A stretch of DNA of 63,788 nt, filler included, from Trichosphaerium sp. ATCC 40318 (Eukaryota > Protista > Tubulinea): NCBI GenBank assembly GCA_038496445.1. It is 4 parts of 4 records of this genome, joined end to end, with 100 filler letters (N's around TTAATTAATTAA, not from the genome) between each part and the next. Parts side by side here need not be neighbours in the genome. Positions count along the whole stretch, not along the records: positions 23,064 to 46,759 come from JALMLS010000302.1; 3 more parts are not named here. One strand, given 5' to 3'. This document shows, in pieces, positions 22,964 to 46,600 of the stretch. Below the pieces are notes generated by a model. That model saw only the letters and a program-made list of their open reading frames with translations, had not been told where the DNA came from and did no database searches. Every line of letters begins with the position of its first letter. The stretch's first letter is position 1. Position numbers and translations under genes: made by a program.

Positions 22964-23184
22964 NNNNNNNNNNNNNNNNNNNNNNNNNNNNNNNNNNNNN
23001 NNNNNNNTTAATTAATTAANNNNNNNNNNNNNNNNNNNNNNNNNNNNNNNNNNNNNNNNNNNNTCCTCAAATGCTTTGCTATGGCGGCCTATCGTGACAT
23101 GCGTATACATGTGCGACGAGGTTCAACGAAAAACTTTCAAAGAAAAATTAGGGATTTAAAAAAACCCTTTAAAATCAAAAAAAA

Positions 23185-23229
23185 CCCTTCCATTAGGCTT
23201 TATTTAATTAATAAAGCCTAATGGAAGGG
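23185..23229. other. 20-bp perfect-stem hairpin (intron 1 of paralog)
   Basis: cccttccattaggctttatt-taatt-aataaagcctaatggaaggg. Confidence 0.9.
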
Positions 23230-23255
23230 GTTAAAAAAAAAAAGGAGGAAGTTGG

Positions 23256-23341
23256 TACCTTTTTCTGCTTGGGTATTCTCCTAGCATTTATAGGCTTTTC
23301 AGAGCCCTAGATGTAGGAGAGTCTTCTTTGTTGTTGCTCAT
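23256..23341 (-). CDS. First exon of a probable paralog of the 30206-36064 gene (rest lost in gap; apparent 1-nt frameshift)
   Basis: Same context as 35956-36090: tttgac..GGATGAGC start, basic exon end, AG|GTAC donor, followed by the same intronic hairpin. Confidence 0.45.
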
Positions 23342-23506
23342 CCTGTGTTTTGATAAAGTCAAACTAAGACAATATCACGTGACGGCGATTGAATCACACA
23401 TGCATATGTATGTCAATACCAGGAACACCTACGTTCTTTGAAATTGATTAATAATTATAAAAAAAAAAAAAAGTGTACATACATTGTTATTTATAAAATA
23501 ATAAAT

Positions 23507-23670
23507 AAACATGCACTTTAGTTTTATTATGTCAATTTCATTGAATCTCTTCAAAGTTTTTATATTCAAACATACACTTTAGTTTTATCAAGGCTATTTC
23601 ACTGAATCTGCTTAAAGTCTTTGTAATTCAAACAAACACTTAAGTTTCATGCACAATTTCAAACATGCAA
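23507..23670. repeat. Degenerate ~61-bp tandem repeat (~2.5 copies)
   Basis: aaacat.cactttagtttt...tgaatct..t.aaagt.tt..attc recurs at ~23507, 23568 and 23630. Confidence 0.65.
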
Positions 23671-23868
23671 TTGACATTGTTGATGACAATTGTGTATGTA
23701 GACAATAGTAAGAAAATAATGAGAAAAATGCAAAATTATGACAAGGACTAATCTTTATGACCCTTGTAACATACGAAAATTTCTACATGCAATAGCATGT
23801 GGCAAAATTAGCTCGGAATGTTACTAACAAGCAAATGTAAGGTTTGAAAAAAAAAATAGTAGCAGACT

Positions 23869-23990
23869 CCTAAACCCTAACCCTAAACCCTAACCCTAAA
23901 CTCTATTGTTCAGTGAAAATCCTAGTATCAGTGAATTAGGGTTTTGTACACTAGGGCTTAGGTGTTTAAACCCTAGTGTTCGCTGATTCT
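23869..23990. repeat. Interstitial telomere-like (CCCTAA/CCCTAAA) repeats with CCCTAG-TGTTC motifs
   Basis: cctaaaccctaaccctaaaccctaaccctaaa, then tagggttt, ctagggcttagg, aaaccctagtgttc. Confidence 0.75.
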
Positions 23991-26609
23991 CATTCGGTGA
24001 ACCAACTACCAAAAAAGGCAAGTCTTGCTCATTAAGCGAAAATATACACTAAATATTAAAAAACTTAGTACTTCTACAAAAACACCTCATAACTATACAC
24101 CAAGGCAATATAAATGGTACATACTTTATACACAATAAACCAAGGCATATTTACATAATATACATCAAGCGCTATGTATATGATGATATACATGGTGAGT
24201 AATCAAGGCAACCCTAATGGATAAAACTATAAAATGGCAAAAAATATTTATTTGCTATCACTACTAAATGCCATGATCATTTAGGACTAAATCATTGTTA
24301 TTTCTATGTAGCTACAATATAATACTTTATAAAAATATATTGTATGATAACATAGATGATATTAAAACTGTTATTTACATCATTTTTTAGTACAAATAGC
24401 ATTTTTGCATGTTGACATTGAGAAAAAACCTTTATTTTAGCACTAAGATGATATATTCTTTTATAAAAAGTATGTTATATATCTAATAATCAAATATAAA
24501 AACAATTATGTATGTAATTTTAACATAAGTGGCCTTGATAGGCATATATACCACAAAAAAAAATAAAAAAGCTATAATTCTCAATAAAACATCTGTGTCG
24601 CTGCATTAAAAACATCTATTGAATTCATGTTTCACAAGTCATCAACTACCATGCTTGAGATCATGTATGTGCAATAGATTGCAAATATATGATATAAGTC
24701 CAACAAAATAGATGAATTGCATAAACACACACCAAAAATAATTATTGGCACTATAAAAAGCTCTATGCCAATATAATTTTGCACCCATGATAACATTTCC
24801 AAATGGATAAAAAATAACCATATAACAAAGATATATGGCATCAAGAGGTACCATGGAGGCAAAGCTGTTTTTGGCAAAAATGGCATTTTTTTGGTTTTTT
24901 TACCATAAAGTATGATTGTAGGTAGCTTCATCAAGATCATCTATGTATATATAGTAAATTATAAGATGATGCCATGATGTTTGTTAATAAAAAATGAAGA
25001 ATCGCACACCATAGATAATATATGGGGGGCCTGGTGCATCAACGAACAATATCATCATTTTTGGCCAAAAAGGGCACAAACTCAAAATGCTTCTAAGCCT
25101 TCAAATCCAACCATCATTTTTGTTTTTATATAGGCTTATATAAAGTATATTAAGATGGCATAACAATTAAAGTAAATATTCATAGGGGGTATGGTGGACG
25201 ACCACTAAAAAATGAAAAAATGGAGGAAATTTCTACATTTTCCTGATTTTGGATCGCATATATGCCACCCCACCAAATAAACTGTATACCTCTTATTATT
25301 ACTATGCCAAGTACTATATATCCTCAGTCGCCATTGATCCATCATGTAGTTGGCTGTGACCATTTTCGAAAACATATGCTATAAAAGGTAAAACATATAA
25401 ATTAATTAATAACTATTCATGATGGACATGTATGACAAAATAGATGAATGCATTGGATTCCTTGAGCAAAATAGCATACATGTATATGCATAAGTCAACT
25501 ATAGATGATCATGTAACTGCGGCCTCCAAGCAAAGATGTATCCAATTTTTTGCTAAAAAAATCCCATTGGAAAAATCAAAAAAAATCCAAAAATCAAAGA
25601 ACGGCTCACCAAATCGACGTATACTGCTATAAAATCCTACAAACCACCAGCAATCGGGTAATTTATGCCAATGTATAAGGTACAAAAAACGAAATTGGCT
25701 TAAGCGATATGATAAGGTATGCGGTAATGCATGGTTCAAATTAAATCCCTAACCCTAACCCAATATCGTTTGTTGCATCATAATCTATGACTAAAATTAC
25801 ATACAAGTACATATTTAAGGTTGACATAGGCATTATTATAATCAAGGCCCCCATACAAACTTCTATCAAATGAAAATCAGCTGGATTTTGGCTGCCAAAA
25901 GCAAAAAAAAGACCCCAAAAATGGCTATCTCAGCATGTATGCCACCGACACAAATCTAGTTGCTTCTACCAACATTGCAACAGTGTTTTACATAAGAAAA
26001 AGTATTCTATTTTTTCAAAAGGTATTCTCAAGAGTCAGAATCTGCTAAAACATTTGGCACCTCTGTAGTAGTATCCCTAACCCTAAAAAATTATCTTAGT
26101 TACAAATAAAAGATTATCTTATATCTCATATTCATGAATAGATATAAAAATAAATAATATCTCATTATGTTGCCATGTATGTATAAATATGAATTTAAAT
26201 TACATTTTAGCTACACATGATATACTAAAAACTTTGTGTATATGAGAAATGTGCATACATATTTTTTACCAAAAAAAAAAAACAATTACAAACTCAAAAT
26301 TGCTTGCATCTATATAACTCATCACTATAGATACCTACACATCAATTATTGCTTGCACCATGTTTATATGGCCTAATAACATATATGTACATACATAAAG
26401 TAATTAAAAATACATTTGTAAATGCAGCCTCCAAATGCAACTGCATGGTAAAAATATTTCAAAATTTGCCAAAAAAAAAAGTTCGTGTGTCGCTCACGGG
26501 CCATGTAGTATACGAATATCATTTTTGATGCTGCACATCATAATAATACATGCCTGTGCCTAGCGGCACAGCCATGAAAGTAGCAAAATCTAATAAAATC
26601 GAAAAAGTA

Positions 26610-26882
26610 GAGGTTTAGGTAACCTTAACCCTAAAACCCTAACACTCGAGGTTTAGGGTTCTCGCAAAAAACCCTAGTGTTCAATGAATATGTTCCATTA
26701 TCTGAACATTAGGGTTAGGGCTTAGGGCTTTGTGTACGCCTGTTATTCTATGAAAACATTCTATTCATTGAACATTAGGGTTAGGTTTTAAAACCCTAGC
26801 ATTCAATGAAAATGCTACATTCTTTGAAAAATGCACTAAAAACCCTAGCTCACTTATATTGTATACCTAGGGTTTAGGGTTT
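26610..26882. repeat. Second telomere-like cluster, both orientations, with repeated CCCTAG(T/C)(G/A)TTCAATGAA
   Basis: ttaaccctaaaaccctaa, ggtttagggtt, aaccctagtgttcaatgaa, ttcattgaacattagggg, aaccctagcattcaatgaa, ctagggtttagggttt. Confidence 0.75.
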
Positions 26883-27153
26883 GCGAAATAAACACACACA
26901 TAAAACATGTGTTTGACTATATTATCATTCTAACACACTATTGCTATGTACAATATATAACGCGAAATTCACAAAAAACACCAAAATGATATTTTGTTGC
27001 ACATTTTATGCTTTACAATCTTCTTTATAAAGATTTTTTGAAAATCATCTCAGTTTTCTATCTTGGATTTTACAAATATTCCACCAATCATATTGGACCT
27101 CATATTATTGCACTATTTTTTTGTATTTTGTATTTTGTAACCGAAATTTTCTC

Positions 27154-29806
27154 ATGGAACCACATCTCCATGCCAATTCCATCTTTGGCTTTTATAAGCC
27201 TAATGCTGCTGTATCTGACTCTAATCATGATTCTCATGATTCTATCTCTGATTCTCCTGATTCTCTCTCTCATTCTCTTGAACCTGAATCTGATTCTGAT
27301 TCTGATTCTTTGCCAACAGCTTCTCCTTCATCTTCTCCATTTCCAACCAACAACCGGCCCTCTCCAACCCCTTCAACCAACCATGACCCTTCCTCTCCTA
27401 TTCCAACCCAGGCAACTCCTAATTCTTCTTCTATAGTGTTTTGTCCTTCTACTACTTCTGAAATAGTACAACCTGCTTTCTTTGAAACCAATGATTATCT
27501 GCCATTTGCTGCAAAGTATGACATGAAAAAAGGCAGAATTGGAAGGGCCAACTATGAAAAAGAAGCTCTCTTTGATACTTGGCCTTCTGTACTTGATTTT
27601 AGACAAAGTGTTATGAATATAAGAGGAGAGGTATATGGTGAAGAGCATTTGATGCAAATACAGCACAATCAAATCAAGAAAAACAACACTTATGGCAATA
27701 TTGATCAAGACATTGGCAGAGTAAGACAGTTTTTCTATTTTTGCAAATGTGCTGCCATGGAAGCAGGACAACAAGTGTCTGAAGCTCACTTTCACTCTAA
27801 AAGGTGCCTCTCTCTCTTTTTTCCTTTTTGTATTAAAGTTCGAGCGATTTTTTAACACGGTTTTTAAGTGTTCGTATTCCGACACGCCCCGCGCCTGTTC
27901 TTTTACCTTTTACATTAAAATCATCTCCTCTAGCTTTTTTGTATTGAAACTCAAACTATTTTAAAAGACATCTTTCCAAGTGTTCACTTTTACCACACCG
28001 AGCTCGCGGTCCCGTTTCGCACACGCCCTGCGCCTGTTCGCTAACCTTTCGCTTAGTTTCTTGGAGCACTATGTCCAATTGTTGGTTGTTTTGAAATATT
28101 GTAAAACATCCATCACCAAGAGCTTTGAGTCCTTGCAAAGATGCTACACCAGAATCCACTTGCATTTTGATTGCAAGTATCAAGATATAATGGATGATTT
28201 TGACAATGACAGTGAAGAAGCTACCAAGTGCAGAACCCACAAGAGAAAGCTGCTTGATGTTATAGATACTTGCACCAGAATCACCAAAAGAAGAAGGTTG
28301 CTATCCTTAACTGTGCCTAGAAAAGTGACTTCAAGCATCACAAGAGTCAACCAAGGCAAAAGCATGATTCCTACAGAGTTTCAAACCTTCATTCTCTTTC
28401 TTTTCAGACAGTTGATAAAATATGCTGATTTAATTGAAAGAACCAAGCTCAAAGCCACTCACTACATTGACAGAGTTATTCTACACAGCAATCAAATCAA
28501 AGATGCAGCATTTGAATACCAGAGATATCTCATCACTCTTTGTGTTATGCTTTCTGGTGGACAGAGAAGACAAGTTGTTGCCAATATAAAAGTGGCTGAT
28601 TTAAAATTCAGACCAGGTGATCAATCTCTTGAATTTGCTCTCAGTGTTGAAAAGAAGCAAAGGAGAAACAACTCCATGGCTCTCTCTGTACGTTCGACGC
28701 TTTTTTTCTTCGCACACGCGTTACGCGTGTTCGGTTTTGTACCGCGAGCTCGCGGTCGTCTTCGAACACGTTAAAACTCTGTTCGTTTTTTTTTGTATTT
28801 TCCGCTCGTCCTGACTTGCTTTTTGTCTGTAGATGGATAACAAGCTGTACACTTATGTTGCTTTGTGGTACAACAACTATAGAAAGCTGTTGGTTGATGT
28901 GAATGCCACCCATCCTGTTCTTCAATTTTGGGTAAACAAAATAGGCACTCCAATGGGCAACAATTCAATCAGTAAGATGGTCAAACATGTTGGAAAGAAA
29001 TTCAATCCTTTTGTCACCAACCTCTCTTGCTCCACTGTAAGGCACATCACTTTGACCAAACTCTTTGCTGGAGAGTATGCTAGCCATTGCCCTGCTGTCA
29101 ACTTTCAAAGCTTGGGTATGGAGATAACCAGACTTCTCAACACTTCCTTGAAGACTGCCAACAAATACTACAATGACTTTGACTCTCAAATACAAGATGA
29201 GTATGGGTTTTTTGGTTTTTTTTTTTTCTTTTTTAGAAACTCACCCTTTTTTTTTTTTTGTAGAGCCACATTAACAATGATCAATAAAGAAGCTTTGGGA
29301 CCTATTGCTGATGCCATAGAAATTCCTGAACACTTGGAAGAGCTCATTGACAAAACCAAACTTCCAGCCATAGTGAGAGACACACTGTCCAGGCCTGTTC
29401 GAGTAGATCCGGACCTACGAAATGCTGTGTCTGAAAAAGATGTCTCTTTTTATGAACCTGAAGGAGCCAAAACTGTGCTTTACCATCAAAGTACTTACTT
29501 TTACCACTACTGATACAATAGATAGATTGCTTTTTATTTTTTACTGAGTTTTTTTTTTTTTTTGTAGATGCACATAAGTTATCCAAAATAATGGCTGTCT
29601 TTAAAAATACACAAGGAGAATTGACATGCAAGGTACAGTTAGCAGACAAATCCATTACTGTTTGGCCTTTTGAAAAGGTGGCCAAACACAACATGGCTGA
29701 TTTGCAACAAGCCATGTTGAAGGAGCTTCAAGAGAGAGATGACAACTATGAGCTTGTCAAAGCAGAGCTAAAAAAAGCCAAAAACCAGGAATTAGAGGAA
29801 GATTAA
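27154..29806 (+). CDS. Intron-containing tyrosine recombinase (~6 exons) with S/D/P-rich N-terminus and possible chromo-shadow-like C-terminus
   Basis: LSGGQRRQVVANIKVADL (box I R), VEKKQR (K), LSCSTVRH (xxxR-H), LLNTSLKTANKYY (box II Y). Introns at 27804-27933, ~28014-28056, 28688-28832, ~29201-29263 and ~29491-29567; exon 2 phase uncertain. Confidence 0.75.
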
Positions 29807-32800
29807 ACTAACACTAACTTGCACCCAACCTTGCACTCAACCCCCCACCCACCTTCCAAACCTTACCTTCTAACCTACACCAACCTTTACCCTAAAATCT
29901 CATTATATTGCACTTGAAATTTTATATATATCTATAACCACACATAAAATAAATAAATAAATAAATATATATAATACACATTCAAACAACAAGTCTTTTT
30001 TTTATTGTACAAAGAGGCTGAATAATAGCTCTCTTTTTTTTTTTTTTTTTTCAATTAAAAAACACATGTACAATGTGTCTTTATTTCGAAAAAAACTTGC
30101 TCTGAAAAAAAAAAAAAAAAAACCTACAAGTTGTTTTTTTTTAAACTACATTAAATTAAACTACATTAAAACTATATTTATTAAGGTAAAGTTACACAAT
30201 GTGTTTTACTCAAAGATTTCTTCACTGAGTTGTTCTTCTCCTTCGCCATCCTCGTCTTCGTTTTCAACAGGCTTTTTACCTGTCTTGTTTTTCTTGTTGG
30301 CCCTTTCTGCTTTGCCAATGCTGTTTCTCTTTCTTTTTTTTGCACCAGAAGATCTAGTTGGTATTTTACCTGGAGTTTTCAACACTCTTTTGCCTCTTCT
30401 TTGTTTTCTTGGTGGTAAATCAGCTTTTTCTACCAGTTGTTCAGTTATGATTTCTTCTTCTTCTTCTTCATCTTCATCATCACTTTCTTCTTCTTTACCT
30501 TTCTTATTATCTTCCTCCTCCTCTTCTTTGCTCTCTTCATCATCTTCACTCAACTGGGTCAAATCTATTTTACCAGCTACAAAAAAAAACTCCAAGTAAG
30601 TCATGTGAAGTTCGCATAAAAAATGCTATATTTCGAACAGGAAAAATACGTGTCGGCGACCGACCGCGAGCTCGCGGTCACGTTCGAACACATAAAATGT
30701 GTGTTAAAAAATCGGCGAAGGGAAAAAATTAATATAAAACTTGCCTTTGATCAAGGTGTCACCAGACTTTGATTCAGGATCAATAACCAAGGTGAGGTGC
30801 AATCTTCCATCCACTTTTTTAATCAAAGTAGGCATAGACAACAATTGGAGCATCTCTTCAGTCTTTGCCTTGTAAAATTTTTGCAACAACCCCTTTCTCA
30901 AAGCCAAACTTCTTCTCCTCTTGGTTCTTGGAGTTAGAGGTTGGGTGGATTGAGAGCCATATTGAGAGGAAGAGGCAGCAGGCTTCTCAGAAGAAGATTC
31001 ACCATTGTTGGATGGTGCAAGTGCTAAGTAAGAACAACATGAGTACTGAGTTATGTCAAAAACAAAAAAAACAAAACTTCGAGCTATTTTTCAACAGATA
31101 AAACACATGTCGGCAACCGACCGCGAGCTCGCGGTCTAATACGAACACAGAAAATATGTGTTCACATTTAACGTACCTCGTTTTAGTCTCTGACTGCTTC
31201 TGGTGGTCATCTTTGTTGGTCCTGACCTTTTATTTACATCACGTTTTGATGTAGAAGGCTGTGGTTTATCAGAATCTAAATAACATCAACTGGTACATTG
31301 GTTTATGAAGAAAAAAAAAAAAAAAAAAAGAGAAAGGAAAAAAAAAAAAACCAACACATCGCGATCGTGTTCGTACCGAGTACGATCGGTCTGTGAGTTA
31401 CTACACTTTCAAACCAAGGCTCACTTGATTTTTTGAACAACCCATGTGCTCTGCTGCTTCTTCTTGGTCTTTTTTGCAGCTGGATTTCTTCTGAAACCTC
31501 ATCCTCAACCTCATCCTCAACCTCATCCTCATCTTCATCTTCTTTTTCTTCAAAATCTTCTTCTTCATTTGATGTAGGAGGAGTTGTTTTAACCATAGGC
31601 TTCTTTTTCTTGCCTTTGCCTTTACCTCTTTTTTTTTTATGCCTGTTTATGGCACTGCCTTCACTTGCCCTTGCATTGGCAGTGTTCTTGGCCCTTGTAT
31701 CTCTAAAAGGCAAATAGGCATTCTCCAACATGGCTTCTAACTGAGGAGCTACAAAGGACATTAGTTTAAAAGTAAACTAGGGGAGAAAAAAAAAAAAAAG
31801 AAAAGAGTACGACCGCTACGTTCGACGAACAGGCAATTCGCGTGTAGTGCCGAGCACAACATTGGATGTGTAGTGTAAAAAAAAAAATGGCACTTACTTG
31901 CTTCTTCCACCTCAGGCAAATCCAAGCACTGCATAGACAACAGAGCAGTGTGAGAGAAGGAGAGCACCTTTGCTGCTTGCTTGTACTTCATTTCTTCTAT
32001 AACCATCTTGGGCAATTTTTGGCCATCTTCTGTGGTGCTGGTCCAAAGCAAGTGCAGGTCGTACATCAAAAGCTGGCGAAATATACACGGACGTAGGCTG
32101 TTCGCGAAATTCACGTGCTCTTCCTCGGTGCTCGTGTCCCACGAGAGCTCGTACCAACCAAGCTCGTTCAGCTGTTTCAAGGCCTCGAGTTAAAGTTAGA
32201 TGAGGCTGGAGGGAGAAGAAAGAAAAAAAAAAAACAACAAAAAAAAAAAACTGACCAATTGGTTTTTTTTTTTTTTGTACCTGTGTGATATATTGGCTGC
32301 AGTTCTTGTACCTCTGCAAATAATAGGATTGATTGGTCTCATGATATACCCTGCAAGTCAGTGCCTTGACAAACTAAATGTACAAGTTAGGCACAAACCC
32401 TTTTTTCAAAAAAAAATATAAAAGGTACTTGACTTACTGCTATTCTGGCATGGAGAGGTAACTCTGCCCATGCAGCATGAGCCAATATTCTAGTCCTGTA
32501 GCCCACTGGATGTTTGGTGTGCTATGATGAGAGTGTGAGTGAACGACCGAAACTTTGTACGACACACAAAATGCGTGTTCGAATCCGACCGCGAGCTCGC
32601 GGTCCGTACTTCGACACGTGAAATGCGTGTTCGAATAAAGACGAAAGCCTACGTACCACATTTTCAGCAGATGCAACCAATTCTGCTATCAGAGCACTGT
32701 CCAATGGCTCAAAAAACATGCCAGCCTTAACAAACTGCTTGCTTTCTTCCCAATTGGTCACATATGGAAAGTATAGATTCATCTTAACCAAAAACTAAAC

Positions 32801-33853
32801 AAAACAATCAATTATAACATACAAATAAAAAAAAAATACAAACTAAAAATCGTCGGTTTTACAACAGAGTATTTTAGTGTTCGTACACGACCGCGAGCTC
32901 GCGGTACGATTTACGACACGCGAAACCTCTGTTTAAAAATACTTGCGAAAAAAAAAAAAAAAAAAAAGATTAAAAAAAAGATTAAAAAAAAAAAACAACC
33001 CTCACCTCTTTCCATTCAGCACGACTGAGCTGAGGTTTGACTTTGCTGGCTCCCCATATTGCAAAATTCACCTTACTTATATCTCCTGCCTCCGCTTGGT
33101 AATCGAAGACCTGGCCCGCGTCGTCGCACCACATCTTGAACAGGTGGCGGTAGCGATCCACCTTGGAGTCTGGAGTGGTCAGACTTTGCAGAAAGTTGAT
33201 CTTGGTGCAGTAGATCGCTATCGCCTGCATCTTGGCGAAAGGATTTATCCACTCCACATTCTTGATTGCAAATTTGCAGGTTGTAGCTGCATTTTGTCTA
33301 AGGCAAACAAGTAAGAAACAATTGAACAATAAGGTAAGGAAAAGCAAAAAACCAGAAAAACAAGAAAAACAAAAAAAAAGGTTCGTCGTTCGAGTTTTTT
33401 TACAACAGGAAAATCTCGTGTTCGAAAGTGACCGCGAGCTCGCGGTCGGTCGACCAACACGTAAAATATGTGTTCGAAAATGTTCGCGAACGTACGCCAA
33501 CTCTGTCAAAAGACAGTGTGCTCCATCTCCAACTCCAAAGCCAACAATAGGGTCTGTATTGTACTCATCACACCAAACAATAGGCATAGGGCAAAGCACA
33601 AACCTTTTGGTAAAGGTTTCATAAATAGGCATCTTCTGTATAATGTTTCTGGGGTTGACTCCTCTGACATTCAAAAAACAAGCTATATGTGACATGTCCA
33701 AGGGGCCTTTGTAAAATGAGGGCTTCTTCACTCTCAGATACTTCTTGTTGATAGAGTTGGCAGCAATCCCTCTTAGCAAGGCCTTTTTTATTGATGGCTT
33801 TATGATGCAGCCATTCAATTTATTGGTGCCTGTCTTCATGTAGCTATATAAAA

Positions 33854-33897
<44 letters not shown>

Positions 33898-35496
33898 GAC
33901 GACGTTCGTTTTCGAACACGTTGAACGCGTGTTAAAAATATCGCGAAAATTGTTACTTACTCCACAAAGAGATGGAAATCTGAATCATTGCCAAAGCTCA
34001 AGGAATCTCTAAAATGGACCAAAAGAAGGGCAATGTAGTACCAAGAATCTGTGACATGAAGTCCCATGGCTGTGTAGAATATGCCAGTCCAGAGTAGCAC
34101 CTGCCAATACAACTGTCTCCACTTGCAGCTTATAATCCATCCATTCCTCTCCTTCTCCTCTACCTTCGATTCCTCATCTCCGTGTTCTCTCGACATGGGT
34201 TCGTGCTCCTTGTAATCTCTGGTGTAGTTGCCTTCGAAGTGCATCGGCTTCCACCACTTTTCTTCATCCGAGGAGTAGATTTTTTTGACATTTTCAATAA
34301 ACTTCTGCAGTTGGTCTACTCCTTCAACAAATGGAAATCTCTCCTAAAGAAACAAATTAATTTAAAAAAAAAACAAAAAAAAAAAAACCTAAAAGCCGAC
34401 GATTTTACAACAGGATATTTAAGTGTTCGTACACGACCGCGAGCTCGCGGTCGCACGTTCGACACATGAAAACTGTGTTATGAATACTTTAGGAAAAAAA
34501 ATCAAAAAAATAATCAAAAAAAAAAAAAATCAGAAAAAAAAAAAAAACAAAAAAAAAAAAAAAAAAAAAAACGAAATAAAACGAACACGGCCCGCGCGTG
34601 TATGTATCGGAAAACGTACCTTGAATGCTGCCTTCAGCTTGTTGTTAGGAGTTATTTGGGACTCCAGCACATTATCAAAGCTGGCAACAAAAAACCCATT
34701 TAGGCATCTCTTCATCCTCTTGATGGGCATGGTTTTAGCATAAACCAACTGGTTGGCTATGATAACACCTCTACATAGATAAATTAGTTGAAATGAATTA
34801 AAAATAAAAAAAAAAAACAAAAAATAAAAAAAAAATATAAATGGCGGCTACGTTTACGAACATGCGCCGCGCGTGTTGCGTCGAACACGAAATTTAATGG
34901 GTAAAAAAAAAAAAAATGGACAAAACAAAAAAAAAACCAAAAAAACAACCAACTTACTCAAAACCAAAGATAACATCTCTGTGTTCTCCAATAAGGGTAC
35001 CCACAATTTTTGTTTCAGTATTGTGGTTTCCATGACTGCTCACAATCATCCAACCAGGGCTTGTTGGAGCTAAAAAGAGTATTAGAAGATGGCACATCAA
35101 ATAAAAATACAAACACGTTTTTTTCGTGTGGAAAATATGACCTCGAGCTTGCGGTCGGAAACGAACACATTAAATATGTGTTACGTATACAACGACAAGC
35201 TTGCAGTCAGTTTTAAAGCAAGACTTTTAAAAAAAAAAAACGGTTTTTAAAAAAAGTACACACTTTTTATGTGTACGAAAACCGACCGCGAGCTCGAGGT
35301 CAGGTACGAACACAATAAACATGTGTAGTATACCATAAAGCAAGCTTGCAGTCAGTTATAAAGCAAGACTTTTAAAAAAAAAAACGGTTTTTTAAAAAGT
35401 ACACACTTTTTATGTGTATGAAAACCGACCGCAAGCTCGCGGTCATGTACGAACACGTAAAAGGCGTGTTTAAAATCGTACAGCGAGCTCGCGGTC
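27997..35496. repeat. Dispersed intronic palindrome GACCGCGAGCTCGCGGTC with flanking ACAC-N9-GTGT boxes
   Basis: Cores at 27997 (partial), 28741, 30662, 31119, 32587, 32889, 33430, 34434, 35139, 35284, 35427 and 35481 (partial). Confidence 0.95.
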
Positions 35497-36064
35497 TGTA
35501 AAAAAAGCAAAACAACAAAAAAATATCTAAAAAAAGTACACAATTAAATTGTGTACCAAAACCAACTGCCAACTAGCGCGACATGCGAACACGCGATATA
35601 CGTGTTCCAATACCGCGACGAGCTCGCTGTTCTAAATTGAAGCAAAATAAAACAGTGTGAACCAAAACCAAACGAAAAAACAACGCACACGCGTTCTGCG
35701 TGTTACGAAACGCCGTTTGAGTTTGGTTCCACCATGAGAAAAAAACCGCATGGTAACGGAAAAACCGTACACATGAAAACCGTGTACAAAAACCGTCGGT
35801 TTTTTTCGAAAAATTTACTTGAAAAATTAACAAATTTAAGGTTTTAAAAAAACCATCTAAAAGCAAAAAAACCCCCTTTATTAGTCTTTAAAAATTAAAA
35901 TAAGACTAATAAAGGGAGTTTTAAAAAAAAAAGAGTAAAAAAAAGAGGTTAGTACCTAGTTTTTTCTTCCTCTTGAGCCTGAGCTTACCATCAGCTTCTT
36001 TGGAGGGCTCATCCTCATCAGAAAACTCAATGTTTATTAGAGAGAGGTCTTCATCTGAGCTCAT
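30206..36064 (-). CDS. ~14-exon, ~1000-aa protein with central ParB/Srx-like domain and acidic/basic low-complexity C-terminus
   Basis: Manual splicing gives consistent phases from MSSDEDL (36064) to EEIFE* (30206), if one GC donor and one GAG acceptor are allowed. Contains NVRGVNPRNI..PMPIVW..GFGVGDGAHCLLTELA..INFLQSLTTPDSKVDRY. Confidence 0.65.
35196..35480. repeat. ~144-bp direct tandem duplication containing the palindrome module
   Basis: caagcttgcagtcagtt.taaagcaagactttt..cggtttt..gtacacactttttatgtgta.gaaaaccgaccgc repeated at 35196 and 35341. Confidence 0.9.
35874..35916. other. 15-bp-stem hairpin in intron 1, homologous to 23185-23229
   Basis: ccctttattagtctt...aagactaataaaggg. Confidence 0.85.
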
Positions 36065-36815
36065 CCTTGATTTATGAAAAGTCAAAAAAGTAAAATGAGG
36101 CTTTTTTTCCCCCAATAATCGCGTTGAGAAATAGACAGGAAAGTTTCGTGTTTCGAAATGTGAATCGGAAATTTCGCCTGTTTAAAAAAAGTAAGAAAAA
36201 AATGAGAATTTGATAGTTTGCAAGATTGTTGATGAGGTTCTGGGTTTGTAAAAAACCCTATCTTGCTGTAACCCTACAGGGAGATTGTATGTGCAAAAAA
36301 CATAAAAAAAAGCCAAAAAAATCGAAAAAATTTTACAACAGGGTAGAGTAGTGTACAAAAAAATACGGCTGGTACATACTCCTAAACTCTAACCCACCCT
36401 AAATAGGTGTGAAGGATTTGAATATAAGGTTTAAGAGAAATCTGAGGGTGTGCAATTGAGAAAAAAAAAACTGCTAAAAACAGCAAATCATACTGGTCAA
36501 AGTTCATATTCAAAGCCAATTTTTTACACAAAGCTGTGTATATACATGGGTATTGTATGGTAAAAATATAAAGCAAATCAGAGGGTGTGCAATTTTGTAA
36601 ATGTTATTCTGGAAGGACACTCTTAAGCCTTCAATATGGTTTTATTACTTTCTTCTTTTTTTTTGGTTGGTTTCTTTCTATCCCCTTAATACTAGGCTAT
36701 CTGTTATCTTATTTAGTTTTGACTTATTATTTTGATTACTTGTTTACAACTCTGTTGCATATATGTCAAAAAATGTACTTGTAGTACACTGTTATGATAG
36801 TTGGTAAAGTAACTA

Positions 36816-38786
36816 CAGGTCTGAAAATTATCATGGTATTATACTGTATTTTATGGTATAATCACCTTTTATGGTACAAACTCAGTATAATCCATAATTA
36901 TACCATATAATTATACCATAAAATATGGTATAATACCATGTTTTTTGGACAAATGGTATAACAGCCATTATACCATGTTTATACCATATTTCAATTTATA
37001 GAATATAATTATACCATAAAACATGGTACTATACCATGGTATTATACCACATTTTACAGTACATTATACCATGCATTATATCATATAATTATACCATAAA
37101 ACATGGTACTATACCATGGTATTATATTGCATTTTAAAGTATATTATACCATGCATTATACCATATAATTATACCATAAAACACAGTATTATACCATGGT
37201 ATTATACTGTATTTTAAAGTATAGTATATCGTGCATTATACCATATAATTATACCATAAAATATGGTATTATACTGTGGTATTATATTGTATAAGTATAA
37301 GTTAGTCAAAGCTCACTTGGTCTACACTTGATTTAATAGCCTTTGGACCTACGCAAACACCATACCACACAATGCTTTGACAGTAGCCGTTATTGAACAT
37401 AATTGGCATATAAATGTGTGAAAAACAGTTTTAAGAGAGAAATCTGGTAATGCGCCCCAATTACGGGCGTTTTAGGGATAAATTGGCCAATTTTCTCCGA
37501 TTGACAGTATTTGAGGAAGAAACCACTCCACATACCCCATGTTAGAACGCTACAGTGGTAGACACACCAAAAACGCGTTTAGTGCTCGAAAAATGCCCAT
37601 TCGCAAAAAACCTCCAATTGGAGGTTTTTTTCCCCGGCTCTCATTTTTTTCTCCCCTCCATAGGCATTTTTACACTCAATCAATGCCATACAGCCTCATT
37701 TACCAAATCAGGAGCAAAATTATTTAATTTTTTTTGACATTTTTGATATACGCTCCAATGCATGTTAAAACGCGTGAATAGTGCTATAAGGCCAAGTTGT
37801 TTCAGAGTCTACCCATTTTTTGAGTTTTTTGGTTTTTTTTGGATTTTTTTGGATTTTTTGAATTTTTCCCTACTAAACGCCCGCATTTGCCAGAACAGAT
37901 AGCATTTAGGCTTCACACCCATGCGTTGACCTTACGAGTGATATTGTAAACCAATTGGCTAAGTCAGAGCACAAAACTAAGTCTTGTCCAGTTTATTGCC
38001 CACACAACACAAGGTATGCTAAAAGTAGTTGTTTTGAAGCCGTTTGCCATAGGTTTTAACCAAGCTAGATAGATGATAAAAAAAAAACCAAGATGTGTTA
38101 GCTAACAGGTACGATTCCGCTAGAACTTGTTTCCGATGAAGTTGGCAGTTGTTTTCATTTCTTTGTTTTAGTCTTGGTTTGGCTCCACCGCACAGGTCAT
38201 TTGTTACTCCCAGTGCCACCACCACAACAAAACAGCAATTTTTGTACAACTATTTATTTTGTGCATCAAGCCTTCACTAATTCTTCTTCTAGTTTTCATG
38301 CTATGTCCATTCGATGCACTTACAGCAAGTACAATATTTTTTTTGAAGGTTATTTGATGTGTCAACTACCACAAAAGAGGATATGGACAAAACCAAAGGT
38401 CACGGATGTAAACAAAAAAATGTATTAATAAATGCAGTTTTATTATTAGAACAGTTTTTACACGGTATAATACACCTGGTTTTGTGGTATAATCTACCAA
38501 GTTTTAAGATATAATATACCAGACTTTGTGGTATTATACTGTGTTTTATACCATGTTTTATGGTAGAATTATACCATATATTGCATTTTTTCAGGTGAAA
38601 AAATATGGTATAAATTCGCACTTTCTACTGCATATTTATGGTATAATTTGGCTGTTTTATGGTATAAATCCTTTGATTTATGGTATATTATACTGGAATT
38701 TGTGGTATAAAATTGTAATCAATGGTATAATTATACCACAAATCCATGGTATCTACCATAAAAACAGCTTGAAAATTTTAGACCTG
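36816..38786. mobile_element. Non-autonomous TIR element with TA flanks and TATACCAT subterminal arrays
   Basis: ta|CAGGTCTGAAAATT ... AATTTTAGACCTG|ta; TATACCAT/ATGGTATA arrays at both ends. Confidence 0.6.
37004..37290. repeat. 80-bp tandem repeat (~3.5 copies)
   Basis: ataccataaa recurs at 37011, 37091, 37171 and 37251 with near-identical units. Confidence 0.9.
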
Positions 38787-38971
38787 TATTAGGATATCTC
38801 ACATGGTTTTTTTTGCAGCTTGTGTTATTGCTATTACTATTCAAAAGCAGCGTTGAGTGCTTTGAGGTTAAAGGTTTCAATTAACAACAACCGCATGTAA
38901 AAAACTGTTTACATTGTTAAGTACATCCTCATTTAGTTTTTAAGGTATTAGGTGGCTATTACATTACAGTT

Positions 38972-41882
38972 TTAAACCATTTTGTATGAGTAAATTCTAC
39001 GGACAAACATTGAGGTGCCCATGTAACCAATTGCTCCACACATGATACCCATACCAAGGCAGAACATAAAGAGATAACCAAAATAAAAACAGGTCTGCAT
39101 TAGACCTGACATTCTCGTCTTCATCATGAAATAGTAGATGCCATACAAAAACACATAACCAGCTGTAGATGTAGCACCCAAAAATGATACCCAATGCCAC
39201 CTATTACAAAGAGTAAATAACCACTCTAACTAAAGACTAACAAAAAAAATCAAGTTGACAAAAGGGGCCAAAGCGTACCTGTAGTCCTCTGAATTTAACA
39301 AGAAGTACACAGATACAATATCAACACATACAGTGACAATAATGAGGATAAAAAATACGAGGAACAAGAAACCTAAAGCCAAAAATAAGTTACATTAACA
39401 TTGGCTTTCCGTGGATATGATAACATCAACTTAAAAGAAAAAAAACCGCCAAACGCACCAAAGACGTAATAGTATTTGTATTGCCAAAACGCTGTGAACA
39501 CAAAGTACATCTCAATAAAGATGGAGCCAAATGGAAGAATACCAGACAGCAAGATGTGTGCCAAAGGCTCTTGGTACCTGTGCAACGTGGTCAGGAAGTA
39601 CACGCTTCACAAACAAACAAAAAAATATTTTCGTACCATTGCTTTTCAGGGATTGGTCTTGGGACTGGACTTACTCTACAAGGGTGGCGTGCTTTACCAG
39701 CAAAGTTACGGCCTACAAGAGTACCAACACCTGTGAGAGGGACGGAGAAGAAAATCCAAATCGCAAAGACAAGGAACATAGTAGTGATTGGGATAGATGC
39801 CAGACTACTGTATGACATAGCGATAATATCAAGAAGGAATGCAACACCAAAGCATGTGCAAGGAAAGAGGATGGCGGTCAATATCATTGTTTGAATCCAT
39901 TGCTTTCCAGCTACAAAGAAAAAGGTGATAAGTTTTTGGAACAAAAAAAAATTTGAGTATTTTGTTCGCCAAAAAAAAAAAAATAGAACGCACCAGCGTG
40001 TTGATGATAGTGGCTTCCGCTAACATATCCTGAAATGAATGACGTGACAGCATAGCAACCAATAAAAGCGCTGACCATACTTCCACGTGCATAGACGAAA
40101 TGACTATAGGACTTTAACATTACAATAAAATAAGAGAACAAACAAAAAAACAAAATGCTTGAAAAGCGCACCTGTGGTAGAAACCAATTGATAGCGAGAT
40201 GATGAACAAAATAAGCGCTGCTATTTGAATACCAGTACCATACAGTGCGGAGAACAATCCAATTTGTGGTGGAGCACGGAATACATCACCCATGACTTGT
40301 TTCCAACCACACTCACCATCAACGCCCATATCCAAGCCTCCATCCTACAATTACAGATTAGATATTTATTTTATATAATTTGTCAAAAACAGAACAATAA
40401 CAAATGACACGCACATCTTCTTCATCCTTTGCAATGGATGCGAAATCCTTGCGGAGAGTGCGCATGAGAATCATTGATACAAGACCCACAAGGAACACTA
40501 CCATCATGAATGAGTTGAAGATAGAAAACCAATGGATCTACCAGCAATGTAAGTAAACAAGACAATAAAATATAAAACATTTTCAAATAAAGGTTTATCA
40601 CTATAACGAATAACGTACTTGATGCTCAAAGAAAGAGTTGTCCAAATATCTGTTGAATCTGGTCTCATACGGTTGATCAGTTTCTAACCAGTGAACAGAA
40701 TAAGAAAATGTAAGCGCTGCGCCTTCGGCCACAGGCTTCAGGGTTTCAGGTGTCAACTTCGCTTCAATAATCTAACGGTTTTTAGTACAACAATTTCCCC
40801 TTTTTCTGGTGCGGTGGCTGATTATTTTTTTTTTTTCAACACAACAAATGAAACTTCATATTAGTTGATTCCTATGCGCATACCTTGTCACCGTTGTACG
40901 TTATGGTGAATCGCTGGTGAGTGAATATGTATGGGTATTCATCTACTTTTCCAACCATTCCCCAGACTGGGAGGTCATCTATCGTTAAAAGGGTTAAAAA
41001 AGTGATATGAAAGGGAGAAAAAAAGAAAAAACAAAAAGCTTAAAACAAATATCTAGGCTGTCAACCAACGCCACTACGTACCCAAGAAAAATTCATACCA
41101 ATATTGCTCTTTGATGGCCTTGTTGAATTTCTTCGCCTCTTTTTTTGTTAGAGTCTTTTCGCAGAGCGTTTTCGTCTCAATGTCTTCTTTAAATTTTATT
41201 TCATAACCACTTTTTCTTAGTTCGTAGCCGAGAATCGCTTCTCCCAATCCTTCAAATCGTTCTTCTTTGTTTTCTGTGATAAGAAACGTAAGCGCATGAG
41301 TAATGCATGAAAGAAGATTAATCAAAAACAAACGCCACGCAATGTTTTTTGGTTTGTTTTTTTTTGACGCAAGTGACTGCCACACGGAATGAAAGAATTG
41401 AGGTCGTGTACGCACCCTCAAACTTGCAAAACGGCAATTTTTTGTGGTACAGGTAGGTTTCTTGTGGGTTAAAATAAGGACCGACTTTATTTATCCATAG
41501 AGTTATAGGAGCACTGTCTTTGTACTAAAATCGCGTCAGTTATACAGTCAGGCACTTTTTAAACGAAAAATCACGGGTTGAGAAGAAAAAAACAAATTGT
41601 TGGGTCTGACAACGTCAGCAAAATGTATGGCCTCAGAATGTCGCGTATTGAGCTCAGTGCATAAGCGAAGAACACTACGAACATCGTGACCAGTGTGTGG
41701 CAGATATAAACGCCCTACTGTTTATTTTTCAAAAAAACGAGCACGCTGCGATCCCCCATTTGAATCTCACCGAAGCGTACGTGCCCGATTAAAAATTTTT
41801 GTTTTGATCCTTCTAAAGGGCATACCTCGGCACAAAAACACACGGCTACGAGCACTGCCAAAGCTACGAGTGCTACCCTCAT
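38972..41882 (-). CDS. TM9SF: Transmembrane 9 superfamily protein (nonaspanin, TM9SF3-like)
   Basis: Signal peptide, [63 protein letters not shown]. Confidence 0.92.
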
Positions 41883-42211
41883 TGTTGTTAGCGTTCTTAC
41901 AGTTACGTGGTGTATTGGATTTTGCCAGTAAAAAACCAAACGACGTTTTTTTACTTCGTTTGAAGTGCAAGTAGCTGACGAGTTGTTCTACTGGCATCTT
42001 AAACGTAGCTGAGCTGGAGATTGAGACATAGTGTTTTGGAAACTAAACCATAATCCAGCCAAGACAGGAGCTCACTGGATTAATGCTTAGACTCCCTTCC
42101 CACCATGTATAGAAGAAGGATGCCACTGAATGAAGAACTGTGGGACACTGGCTGCATGGTTGGCACATACGCTGACAAGAGAAGCTTTATGTACGCCAAC
42201 TTACCATGATT

Positions 42212-43494
42212 CTGTTATTATACATTTTATTTTCTTTTATACAATTACATAAGTTGCAGCACACAACTTGGGCATCAAACGTTGACTGTCATCTCATTTA
42301 CCTTTCCTTTGGTAGGTGCAAAGCATTGTCTTGCAGTTGCATGAAGCCACCTTGAAAATGGTAGTGAACACAACAAAACAACAGAACTGTTCTTGTACCT
42401 CTGAGACGCAAACACTTGTTGTTTTCCAAATAAACGCATATCCCACTCTATATTGTCATAAACTAATTGCAGTACACCTGGGTAATAACGCGACAACCCA
42501 TTAGCGCCCATTATTTTTAAATGGGTTTGTGAGATACTGTACCAATCATCCATTGTTTTGATGCCTAAAGAGGACTCTGCACATCGAACAAATCTAGCAA
42601 TGTTGTGTTGTTGTTGCCAATAGTAGTTTGGAGCTCCTTTCACAAAGTGTCAGCGTTTTCTTTTTTGATAAACAACACTACGCACTTGCTACAGAATGTT
42701 GCCTAAATTTGGCCTCTATCCACGGGTGTTCTGGCCTCATGGCCGACAACAAGTAAGATAATTTGTTTTGAAAAACCCTAAATAATAATTTTTTAGCTGT
42801 CATAAAAACAATGCAGTGTACGCTAGAACGCCAGCTCCTCCAGAACGTTGTAATTGTGCGACAGTGATGGTGTACCACTGTTGATGCACATGTAAGCCCT
42901 CTTCTTCTTCAAACTTGGCGGTACATAATCAGTGGCGTAGGATTAAAATATACAAAACATGTGACGTACCTTTGCTAGGAATGATTGCCTGTTTTTCTCG
43001 ATCCTCCAAAATCCTTGTGGCATAGTCTCTAACGAAACAATTACGATCAAACTGCACAAAACACTGCATAACTGAATCTAGTTACAACCCAGTCATGATC
43101 CGGATACACTGATTGTACGAGTTTGTGGACTGAGTCGTTGTGTTGCCTTTGAAGTTGTAAACCATCAAAAAAAAAAACAACAATGTGTCAAAATGTGCAT
43201 GTCTGTACGACGTCGTACCACGCAATATTTCGGCCACCAGTGCGCACTGCAGCGCTGGTGATACGATACCAATCGTCCAGATGGCGTATGTTGTACTTTC
43301 GCTCTACCTGGGGCGAAAGTCGGTTAATATTTACCCAAATCCAGCGTTGTAGCAATCAATACGTTTTTAAGAGTTTCAAGGCGCTCTGCAGATAACCACT
43401 GTGTGTACCGTGCTTTAGGCTCTCTAAATACGCGGCGATGATGTATAAGTACTTGACACTGGCTGGAAAGTACAGTGTGGCATAGTAGCTTCAT
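42212..43494 (-). CDS. Hypothetical multi-exon protein with 'DDWY.I' / 'P..YW' repeats
   Basis: Repeated HLDDWYRIT, DDWYSIS, MPQGFW, APNYYW motifs; ends approximate. Confidence 0.5.
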
Positions 43495-43685
43495 TACGAA
43501 TGAAGCTAGGACGGATTTGCGTAACAGTCGTTGCCAAGTGTTAGAAAAGAGTTGGTTTGGGCGTAAAATTAAAGTACGACAAACTTCTAAATAGATTGAC
43601 CGAGTTCTCTGTTCATTTTTGGCATCCACACTTTCACTACATTTGGCCAACACTCCTGTTAAAAAAAACCAGTGCACAGTGCCTT

Positions 43686-46600
43686 ATGGAACCACAGCAG
43701 CTAAAAATGCTGCAAGCGAGGCTTATGGAGCAACAGGTGCATACGAAAATTATACAACTTGTGTTTTAACACGGTACAGCTTGAAATTGATACTTTGTAC
43801 AAAGAAAACGCGTCTCTGCGCCAAAAGCTCTCCCATTCCAAAAAGGATGCTCTTAAGGCGACTAAAAAGCTGTACGGGCATTACAGTTTTGTTTACGCAT
43901 TGTTTACGCTTACGCAATCGTGCTAGAAAACGTAGGAGCAAAGTAAAAGAAGAAAAGATTGACGCTAATTCCGTCGCTTTTGAGGATGACGCACAAAGCT
44001 TTGTGGTATCGCTGCAATGCGACTTTAGAGATCATACGAATTTTTTGTCTTGGTTAACGGCTAACCAGCTCAAAAACTTCGACATCGTGTTCAAAACAAA
44101 TCCAGCCGTTCCTTTTTCCACTCAAAACACAATTTTTTTCAAACAGGTACAATTAAAAAAAAACGCAATTTAGCAAAACAGGCAAAAAACAATAAACTGA
44201 TATAAAAATTCAGCACCCAAACATTCAAGGCCAGTTGGTGATTGGCCACGCTTCCAAAGAGAGGTTGTTGGAATTGTTGTTACTGCCTTCCAAAGGTACT
44301 GATCTCAATCTTTAACACAACGTTCTTTTTTTTTCTTAGTTCTCTTGTATTTTCTAATACCATCAAAACATAGCCACAATTCGCAAGATGCTTGATATAG
44401 AAAGGTTTTCTCAGACTATGTATCTTACATATGGCTCTTGGACTACTGCTAAGGAACTTTTCGAGCATATAACGAGCACTTTAGTACTCACTAAAGATGA
44501 TATTGTAAGGTGCAAATACCACGACTCTTCGTATAGTTTTTGATGTACTGATATTCTATTTTTTAGTACTCTAGACATTATAATGAGAGAATTAATAACA
44601 TGGATGCACACTACACGAGGTCTTGATTTCGTAGGTGGTCTCAAGAAGGCGTTCAATTCTTTTGTAAAGAGACTGAAAAAGTGTGATTTCGAAGTTGCAG
44701 CCCAAGAATCAGAGCGTTTAGTCACCTCCTTAAAAGATGTCACCGATCCTTATACACCAGTTTCAGGAGAAAACGCATCTCCTAGAACACCAAGACGCAT
44801 GTAAGTATCTTAGCTATTGCTCACTAACGACTTTTTTTTTTTGTACACTTGTAAAACCTGATGTATTTTAAATAGGCTTGCCAAATCTGCCATGAGCTCT
44901 CTATTAGGACTAGAACCCATGCAAATTGCAGAACAATTAACATTAATGGATCACGAGCTGTACAAGGCAATTCCTGTTTCAGATTTTGTGAATAATGCTT
45001 GGATGAAAGAAAAAGAGTCCAATCTTGTATCCCTAATCAACTCCAGTAACAGAGTACGTAACAGGTTTTCAAAAGATACCGCCAATTTTATTATTACTGC
45101 AATGGATCTAATTCTGGGCATAGTTGTTTCAGTGGTTTAGTACAGAAATAATAATGCTTAAAACTCCAGTTGAGCAAGCGGGTTGTATTAGCAAGATAAT
45201 TGCTGTTGGCGACTACATGCTAAACTTAAGAAATTATACCGGGCTATATGAAGTTGTCACGTGTCTGGAAAATATGGCTGTAGCTAAACTCCAAGAAGCT
45301 TGGAAGGTATGACTTTCAAGGCGTTGTTTTTTTCTTCTTTAGAACCCAATTGTATTTCTAAAATCTGAGCGGATAAATAGTTAGTTACAGAGAAAGATAT
45401 GGAGACACGTGCAATTCTAAAGGATACACTATTGGACCCAACTAAGTTCAGGGAGAGTATGAGTGAAGTAACAAGTCAAAGCACTGCGGCAAGTACAGTA
45501 CCTTGTGTTCCAGTAGGAAGTACGCTATACATAACCCAACGTTGAGTGAACTCGGCTAATCCTAGTCAGCATTTATTTGCAGCGGTGTTTGCAAAATTAA
45601 TGACAATGTAAAAACTATGACGCCTCAAGGTCATATAAATTGGTCCAAGATGAGGCTCCTAGGAAAGAGTATATGGGACTTTAGTCAATATCACGGACAC
45701 TACGACATATTGCCGAACCCATCCGTGCAGAAAAAACTTCAAGAAGCTAGTGTGCGGGTTTCATCCAGTATTTTTTTAAAGCTACTTGCAAACAGAATGA
45801 GTTCTTATTTTATTGTAGGGCATTGAGGAAGACTGCACTCGTTATGCAATTGCCAATTTACGTGCCAATAACATAGATTTTGAAGAAACGCCCGAGAAGA
45901 CTTTAGAGTCTATGTTTAGCTGGCTATTCCAAGCACATAAAGTTGAAACATTTAAAAAGGGTGCTTGTTCTTATATAAAAATCTTTATAATTGACCACTC
46001 GCAACAAAAGGTGACATCGTGTTTAAGCAAGGTGATGATTTGACAAAGTTATATTGGATAAAGGAGGGTACCTTCCACGGGCGTAAGAAAGAGCTTGAAG
46101 GAGTAATATTAGAGCGCGCTGAGATTATGGGTGAAGAAGCTCTTTTTGATGGTGTACGGCCAAATACTTTTTTTTTTCAATTTTTAGTTTGTTACTTACG
46201 TACAAAAGTTTGATGCACAATCAACAGCCTATGCCGCTACGGATGGTGCTTGTTGGTCCATATACGGAGACCAGTTCTTAGTCGCAGTAAAATCTATGCC
46301 AGAGATTTCTGCACCTTTGTTTAAATTCATTGCACGGCGGTTTACTACTTATGCTTCGTACCTAAGTCATGATATAATCTTGGAAGATGACGAAACACTG
46401 GTTGTGACTAATTTAACAAAATCTATGTGTATAGGCGCTACGCCAAAGGAACAGTACCGCTGTATGTCCTCAAAGTTTTGGAGATCACATTTAAAGGTAC
46501 AATATTCACTTTTTTTGTAAAACTAATGTTGACACCACCAAGGACCAATCAGTCATACAAGCATTGGCTTGTTCTATGTCTAGAAGAAGTCACCTGGGTA

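Follow-up and report, generated by a model that had tools for sequence, protein, structure and literature searches.

A stretch of protist DNA (63,788 nucleotides from Trichosphaerium sp. ATCC 40318, referred to as the window) contains two convergent, intron-containing genes, gene A and gene B, whose introns carry an array of palindromic DNA sites with a fixed geometry. We tentatively favour the view that this pair is a Crypton-like transposon with a tyrosine recombinase (YR), in which CpG methylation is blocked locally by an accessory protein bound to the phased sites. All coordinates are those of the window. The analysed piece comprises positions 23064-46759, and its edge truncates the sequence on the left. 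It is eukaryotic, non-human and AT-rich with short introns, whose style suggests a protist, perhaps an amoeba. Ordinary host genes lie near the gene pair.

A first-pass annotation had proposed convergent spliced genes at 27154-29806 (plus strand) and 36064-30206 (minus strand). Both models held up, with open frames in 5 and exactly 14 exons. Gene A has 705 codons without internal stop, and all four of its introns are of the GT-AG type. Gene B has 1018 codons with a single terminal stop at 30206, 12 GT-AG introns and one GC-AG intron (intron 13, 30577-30744), for which the GC donor (AAG/GCAAGT) is required to keep the frame. The models, with 17 introns together, are based on scripted frame checks of the sequence alone. 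The genes are:

27154-29806, plus strand: gene A, encoding a putative tyrosine recombinase of 705 aa; open frame
27154-27803, 28057-28687, 28833-29200, 29264-29490 and 29568-29806, plus strand: the five exons of gene A (frame check)
30206-36064, minus strand: gene B, encoding an orphan protein of 1018 aa with acidic/basic low-complexity ends; open frame
36064-35956, 35069-34958, 34770-34620, 34343-33961, 33843-33496, 33297-33006 and 32782-32657, minus strand: gene B exons 1-7 (frame check)
32521-32438, 32373-32281, 32183-31898, 31748-31425, 31275-31177, 31023-30745 and 30576-30206, minus strand: gene B exons 8-14 (frame check)

An 18-bp palindrome is found 12 times in the piece when up to three mismatches are allowed. 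All matches lie between 27994 and 35496, while 0 were expected from 100 shuffles. In agreement with the first-pass annotation, which had placed the palindromes in the introns of both genes and nowhere else, 12 of the 12 matches are intronic: two in gene A and the rest in seven introns of gene B. The host genes have none, and neither do the left intergenic DNA and a neighbouring terminal inverted repeat (TIR) element. The palindrome is flanked by a second dyad of 17 bp, ACAS-N9-STGT, such that a larger dyad-core-dyad module is formed. For a spacer of 9 the dyad has 34 exact copies in 27150-36100, compared to at most one at any other spacer between 3 and 15 except 7, where the six copies are read as shifted matches inside ACACAC runs. 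Over 26850-36420 the count is 37 dyads versus 0.52 expected, and 13 kb of host, left intergenic and TIR-element DNA contained none.

The distance between the starts of the two dyads is 51-52 bp in all ten complete modules, and the core is located 25-27 bp from each of them. At this spacing about five turns of B-DNA separate the dyads, and the core faces the other side of the helix. Across the modules the pairwise identity is 96% for the core and 94% for the dyad half-sites, and 48%, 36% and 34% for the N9 centres, linkers and outer flanks, respectively. Invariant motifs in combination with diverged linkers and flanks indicate selection on motif and spacing rather than copying, and a fixed geometry with free linkers is expected from selection on a protein-DNA complex. 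This argues for the modules being putative binding sites on double-stranded DNA.

Dyads also stand alone: four further introns and three exons contain them, one lies where the 3' ends of the genes face each other, and others are located upstream of both genes. Along gene B the sites are evenly tiled: the largest gap between site clusters is 494 bp (P = 0.0009 compared to random placement), and the exonic dyads sit in stretches without intron-supplied sites. Within the genes and between them the sites are as follows (the dyads upstream of the genes are listed below with the candidate end zones):

27855-28037: gene A intron 1, dyads at 27855, 27882 and 28021 and a decayed core at 27994
28714-28782: module in gene A intron 2, spacing 52
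30637-30704: module in gene B intron 13, spacing 51
31094-31161: module in gene B intron 12, spacing 51
32562-32630: module in gene B intron 7, spacing 52
32864-32932: module in gene B intron 6, spacing 52
33405-33473: module in gene B intron 5, spacing 52
34410-34478: module in gene B intron 3, spacing 52, with an extra single dyad at 34585
35113-35785: array in gene B intron 1, with modules at 35113, 35258 and 35401 in a tandem repeat of 143-145 bp, followed by dyads at 35538 and 35589 (51 bp apart, no intact core) and single dyads at 35687 and 35769
31354-34876: isolated dyads that lack a core, in gene B introns 11 (31354), 10 (31829), 4 (33916) and 2 (34860, one mismatch)
29382-29398: exonic dyad in gene A exon 4, beside three of the four gene A exonic CpGs
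30267-30283: exonic dyad in gene B exon 14, adjoining a CpG cluster at 30244-30259
32085-32101: exonic dyad in gene B exon 10, within a CpG cluster at 32060-32165
30062-30078: dyad between the 3' ends of the two genes

Outside gene B intron 1 the modules are not part of tandem arrays. Within the array, the core at 35139 mirrors single changes of its two neighbours at 35284 and 35427, as if it had been inverted; recurrent change is the alternative. Palindrome matches in viral and metagenome contigs were rejected as single chance matches in DNA of 66-71% GC without dyads.

The CpG content of the locus largely follows the sites. In the gene A exons there are four CpGs in 2115 bp (observed/expected ratio, o/e, 0.05) and in the gene B exons 36 in 3060 bp (o/e 0.26), compared to an o/e of 0.76-0.83 in host regions. 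Introns with modules reach 1.5-6, and the short motif-free introns are at about 0. TpG/CpA is in excess in the exons of both genes (1.34-1.43) and CHG is not depleted. Repeats that have long been methylated at CpG usually show such a pattern, with islands spared, and methylation is its presumed cause here. A CpG cluster lies beside each of the three exonic dyads. Within 60 bp of these dyads we found 17 of the 40 exonic CpGs versus 2.8 expected by permutation, the significance of which is overstated since clustered CpGs are treated as independent and the motif often ends in CG. As the motifs contain or abut CpG, the link between CpG and motif is also partly circular. A periodicity of the CpG clusters at nucleosome length (best value 144-150 bp) was not significant (P = 0.11-0.13). 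The first-pass annotation had offered segregation, compaction or protection from silencing as functions of the palindromes; among these, the CpG evidence favours the last.

According to the account that we favour, the two genes would form a YR-type DNA transposon (loosely speaking, a Crypton), the YR would excise it as a circle, and the protist host would methylate CpG in its repeats. The element would bear its own array, in which the dyad stands single or is paired five helical turns apart around the palindrome. A dimeric element-encoded protein, most likely that of gene B, would bind these sites and keep the surrounding DNA unmethylated and open, such that the element stays expressible. Introns would host the sites at no coding cost, and where they leave long gaps the dyad would be written into exons. 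The earlier proposal of a self-contained two-gene element is supported.

Gene A probably encodes a YR, judging from two motifs:

28556-28576, plus strand: box I-like motif GGQRRQV with the candidate first catalytic Arg (YR profile)
29031-29171, plus strand: box II-like STVRH and LNTSLKTANKYY with the candidate catalytic Tyr (by eye)

GGQRRQV is the best local match of a small YR profile and in register with it, at an E value of 0.15 that is not significant; it also tops 458 six-frame stretches at E = 2.2. In STVRH a Ser occupies the position where His is usual, while by eye the R, the S-x-x-R and the Tyr are normally spaced. Active YRs with His substitutions exist (PMC10104507). The profile is built from bacterial YRs, further members of which were too alike to deepen it, and it missed box II of gene A. 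Gene A intron 2 moreover interrupts the putative domain, and the tests covered its exons one at a time. The YR label of the first-pass annotation thus stays plausible as a motif resemblance, without a significant match for box I. We presume that the gene A motifs resemble those of CryptonV-type and 'MGTS'-type recombinases. A match of RVT_1 to exon 2 (E = 0.0096, 16 bits) is far below the Pfam cut-off of 29.6.

For neither gene was a relative found in Pfam, PHROGs, NCBIfam or PADLOC when searched exon by exon, and exact look-ups as well as searches of viral contigs, phages, plasmids and PDB sequences were all blank. Word-index searches with the gene A open reading frames (ORFs) were blank as well; only proteins of 0.55-1.75 times the query length are visible to them, hence full-length kin would be unseen. 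The natural ORF of gene B at 32985-33839 had no relative among 1.84 billion representatives (phmmer). Single-sequence AlphaFold models of two protein pieces, from gene A and gene B, reached pLDDT values (predicted local distance difference test) of 33 and 30, and Foldseek returned noise.

The first-pass annotation had called gene B ParB-like and had proposed a ParB/parS partition logic. The call goes back to one motif:

33513-33530, minus strand: GDGAHC, with Cys at the position of the essential Arg of ParB

By eye there is a loose ParB-like pattern around GDGAH. The P-motif of gene B, however, reads GAHC instead of the GxxR of ParB, with Arg replaced by Cys. GxxR is required for nucleoside triphosphate (NTP) binding, and for proteins of the ParB fold, mutants with GxxR changed to Ala are used as controls that do not bind (PMC12704722). 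No ParB match was obtained in Pfam, NCBIfam, PHROGs, PDB or plasmids, nor with a profile of nine ParB sequences, and the piece holds no ORF for a ParA ATPase. A working ParB clamp in gene B is unlikely, though the protein may have a remote ParB/Srx-like fold. Neither the label nor the partition logic is supported. The sites, moreover, are evenly tiled instead of forming one centromere-like cluster.

The surroundings of the two genes suggest a repeat family. The following features were assigned by alignment or by their position:

23064-23375, minus strand: broken paralog of the gene B 5' end, cut by the piece edge (alignment)
23850-23894, similar to 36357-36403, and 23944-24002, similar to 26768-26829: stretches upstream of the paralog (scores 41 and 40)
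35868-35922, minus strand: perfect hairpin at the start of gene B intron 1 (z = -7.1), kept in the paralog
26620-26949: candidate left end zone upstream of gene A, with a TTAGGG/CCCTAA cluster and dyads at 26896 and 26933
36135-36403: candidate right end zone upstream of gene B, with dyads at 36135, 36338 and (weaker) 36276 and, at 36357-36403, a telomere-like motif

The paralog holds the promoter word, exon 1, the donor and a hairpin (23185-23229), and its local alignment with gene B scores 90, compared to 27 ± 6 and a maximum of 62 for the null. The paralogous exon 1 noted previously at the left edge is therefore real, though it stops early, at codon 18 from the ATG. A broken and diverged paralog next to the locus points to a repeat family. 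The scores of the two upstream stretches both exceed the maximum of 200 local shuffles. Upstream of the paralog, one stretch like the gene B upstream zone and one like that of gene A thus lie together within 150 bp. Two related elements joined head to tail, a product expected from tandemly integrated circles, may account for this arrangement. The hairpin has a stem of 20-21 bp just past the first donor, with folding z scores of -7.1 (35868-35922) and -8.0 (23185-23229). Alignment shows it to be common to gene B and the paralog despite two double-sided changes and a paired indel; unlike the modules, it looks like a true conserved secondary structure. Between the two end zones no long direct or inverted repeat was found in the single copy at hand.

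The CpG cluster in intron 1 of the paralog (23084-23127) carries ACAT-N8-ATGT instead of the N9 dyad, possibly the diverged motif of a sister family. A 61-bp tandem repeat (2.3 copies) is located upstream of the paralog at 23507-23647. The words TTAGGG and TTTAGGG occur in both orientations at 23869-23905, 25743-25760, 26071-26088, 26620-26880 and 36382-36403, concentrated upstream of the element genes. The 2.6 kb from 24000 to 26600 are AT-rich and poor in CpG, have no recognisable genes and lie between the similar 60-bp stretches at 23944-24002 and 26768-26829; this is possibly another decayed repeat.

Among known systems, Cryptons (PMC3212892, PMC13465315) share with the locus a spliced YR-like gene of similar size, the lack of a reverse transcriptase (RT), an optional second gene and the lack of evident long terminal repeats. 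Typical members have a YR domain with an R-H-R-Y tetrad, lack TIRs, carry terminal direct repeats of 4-6 bp and form dispersed multi-copy families. The second gene here, in contrast, is a 1018-aa orphan on the opposite strand and neither a C48 peptidase nor a transposase, and the first catalytic His position holds Ser. An internal phased site array is not described in the consulted parts of the two papers. On no gene A exon did Pfam report the CryptonA/CryptonF domains DUF3504 and GCR1_C, in an exon-wise search of limited sensitivity.

The closest functional parallel is provided by VANDAL elements and their VANC proteins. In the introns and other non-coding parts of VANDAL21, VANC21 binds dense short motifs whose spread was due to tandem repeats, and the CG methylation there is removed locally (PMC5735166). 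As in these elements (PMC5735166, PMC10398659), a transposon accessory gene is accompanied here by motifs specific to the element, which are dense in introns as well as in intergenic and terminal regions, motifs are spread by tandem repeats (the 143-145 bp array in gene B intron 1), and the DNA would locally escape CG methylation. VANDALs, however, have a Mutator DDE transposase and asymmetric motifs of 8-9 nt in one orientation, while here two palindromic motifs form a fixed 51-52 bp module beside a YR-like enzyme in a protist host, without sequence similarity. Neither a Mutator DDE transposase nor a VANC-family protein was matched by Pfam on the five gene A exons or the scanned gene B exons. 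On present evidence the locus may work like VANC without being a member, given the other enzyme, motif type and host.

Bacterial ParABS systems (PMC12704722) resemble the locus in their palindromic sites of 17-18 bp and in a G-D-G-x-H stretch recalling Box II, but here the GxxR Arg and a ParA are absent, no helix-turn-helix was detected, and the sites are spread through spliced genes. Instead of a clustered parS centromere there are two motif types evenly tiled over 9.5 kb. The yeast 2-micron plasmid (Flp, Rep1/Rep2 and STB) is likewise eukaryotic selfish DNA in which a YR is combined with accessory proteins and a cis locus of iterated sequence; it is episomal and intronless with one partition locus, in contrast to the chromosomal, tiled arrangement here. 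Starships (PMC10104507) also have a YR-like gene at one end, pointing inward. The locus differs from them in having no DUF3435 match in Pfam, one companion gene without cargo, a size of about 10 kb and a host that, judging from gene and intron style, is unlike a filamentous ascomycete. Polintons, Polinton-like viruses and DIRS elements were rejected because RT, capsid, pPolB and packaging ATPase are all missing from the edge-cut piece, as the first-pass annotation had stated for the first three. The locus is real, non-random and unusual; the known kinds in question are YR DNA transposons and motif-array anti-silencing, membership in which is unproven.

Several points weigh against the anti-silencing account, besides the overstated permutation and the partial circularity mentioned above. 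The sites could instead be bound by the YR itself or by a protein of the host, and a CpG methylation system of the host is an assumption. Two exonic CpG patches of gene B (33093-33236 and 34167-34269) have no dyad; they contain many CpGs, with a GC content at third codon positions of up to 0.8. Within the analysed piece there are no ends, no second full copy and no empty site. Since detectable relatives and usable models are lacking for both proteins, the YR identity is at the level of motifs and a DNA-binding domain of gene B was not identified.

Other explanations, not all of them mutually exclusive, have therefore to be weighed. The excised circle may be hitched to chromosomes by the gene B protein on the array, as Rep1/Rep2 and STB do for the 2-micron plasmid; this is the partition idea of the first-pass annotation in a eukaryotic version. 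Iterated palindromic sites next to a probable YR reproduce the layout of that plasmid, which encodes the YR Flp, and the loose pattern around GDGAH would fit. Such tethering is nevertheless unlikely: besides the missing GxxR arginine, ParB profile support and ParA, no replication gene was found, the sites tile transcribed genes rather than one locus, the element lies in a chromosomal context, and tethering alone leaves the CpG-free exons unexplained. Alternatively, the YR and/or the gene B protein may wrap or compact the element on the phased dyads for recombination, with CpG retention as a side effect of the footprint. The accessory sites of cer/psi and the arm sites of lambda att are models for such a synaptic architecture, and the strict five-turn phasing with the central site on the opposite face as well as the dyads in both candidate end zones agree with it. 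What makes it rather improbable is that accessory sites normally lie a few hundred bp from the crossover and not along 9 kb. In addition, neither motif has the arms of 11-13 bp and the asymmetric spacer of 6-8 bp that are described for YR core sites (PMC3212892). It is also rather unlikely that a host factor, a transcription or CpG-island-type protein exploited by the element, binds the sites while neither element protein does. The missing DNA-binding domain in gene B would allow for it and the telomere-like words in both promoter zones suggest host-factor use, but both motifs are absent from the neighbouring host genes, and a phased two-motif module that is confined to two genes is better explained by a binder which the element itself encodes.

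A domesticated, immobile and self-regulating gene pair would explain why both frames are intact over 17 introns and why ends were not found. We give it little credence, given a CpG depletion unlike that of host genes, the adjoining broken paralog and TIR element, and the failure to find a conserved relative among the 1.84 billion representatives. It is very unlikely that the module is a small miniature inverted-repeat transposable element (MITE) or introner that jumped into or created the introns. The module does measure about 70 bp with inverted outer ends, and gene B introns 3 and 6 are 78% alike over 213 nt. Under neutral decay, however, copies should diverge evenly and lose CpG fastest, whereas here linkers and flanks are at near-chance identity around almost invariant CpG-rich motif positions. 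The introns also differ in their ends and lengths, and dyads occur alone and inside intact exons. Copies alike from end to end, with shared termini and in unrelated host genes, were not found, nor was a generic MITE scattered in host introns, the motifs being absent from the neighbouring host genes and their introns. This supports the first-pass reading of the palindromes as intronic sites acting at the DNA level. RNA hairpins that aid splicing of unusually long introns are highly improbable, even though the introns with modules measure 117-886 nt versus 63-97 nt for motif-free ones and the core folds as a 7-bp stem. A single RNA stem would require pairing across the core, but the linkers can pair at only 13 of 80 positions and the N9 centres do not exceed shuffled partners in this respect (P = 0.65). 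Folding of the introns gives z scores from -2.9 to +0.9, core variants are not compensatory, Rfam gave no match, and dyads occur also outside transcribed introns.

The remainder of the piece is occupied by a separate transposon and ordinary genes:

36816-38786: non-autonomous DNA transposon of 1.97 kb with short TIRs starting CAGGTC and a TA duplication
about 38970-41700, minus strand: host TM9SF/EMP70 gene
about 43600-46759, plus strand: host RasGEF gene with a cyclic nucleotide monophosphate (cNMP)-binding domain

The TIR element is placed between the gene A/gene B locus and the host genes. It has subterminal repeats of 80 bp and 21-22 bp, a CpG o/e of 0.56 and no Pfam match. A further, unassigned spliced gene is probably present at about 42100-43700 on the minus strand.

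To our knowledge, sequence-specific anti-silencing by transposons has been shown mainly in plants (VANC, Spm TnpA, Mu). If the anti-silencing account is true, an independent case in a YR element of a protist would make it a general strategy. Transposon introns would gain a function of their own, namely holding DNA sites without coding cost, and sites would be seen to be written into exons where introns are absent. The exact motif, its spacing and the candidate protein make the idea directly testable. We see a small chance of an altogether new class of YR element, in which the orphan accessory protein assembles into a coat on the phased modules along the whole element; the coat would both protect the element against methylation and help the excised circle to persist when cells divide. 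Introns would be kept or gained as shelves for the sites, and the protein would possibly adopt a remote ParB/Srx fold without nucleotide binding. Under the anti-silencing account as well, the two proteins, orphans among billions of sequences, would define a new lineage of YRs and a new family of DNA-binding proteins.

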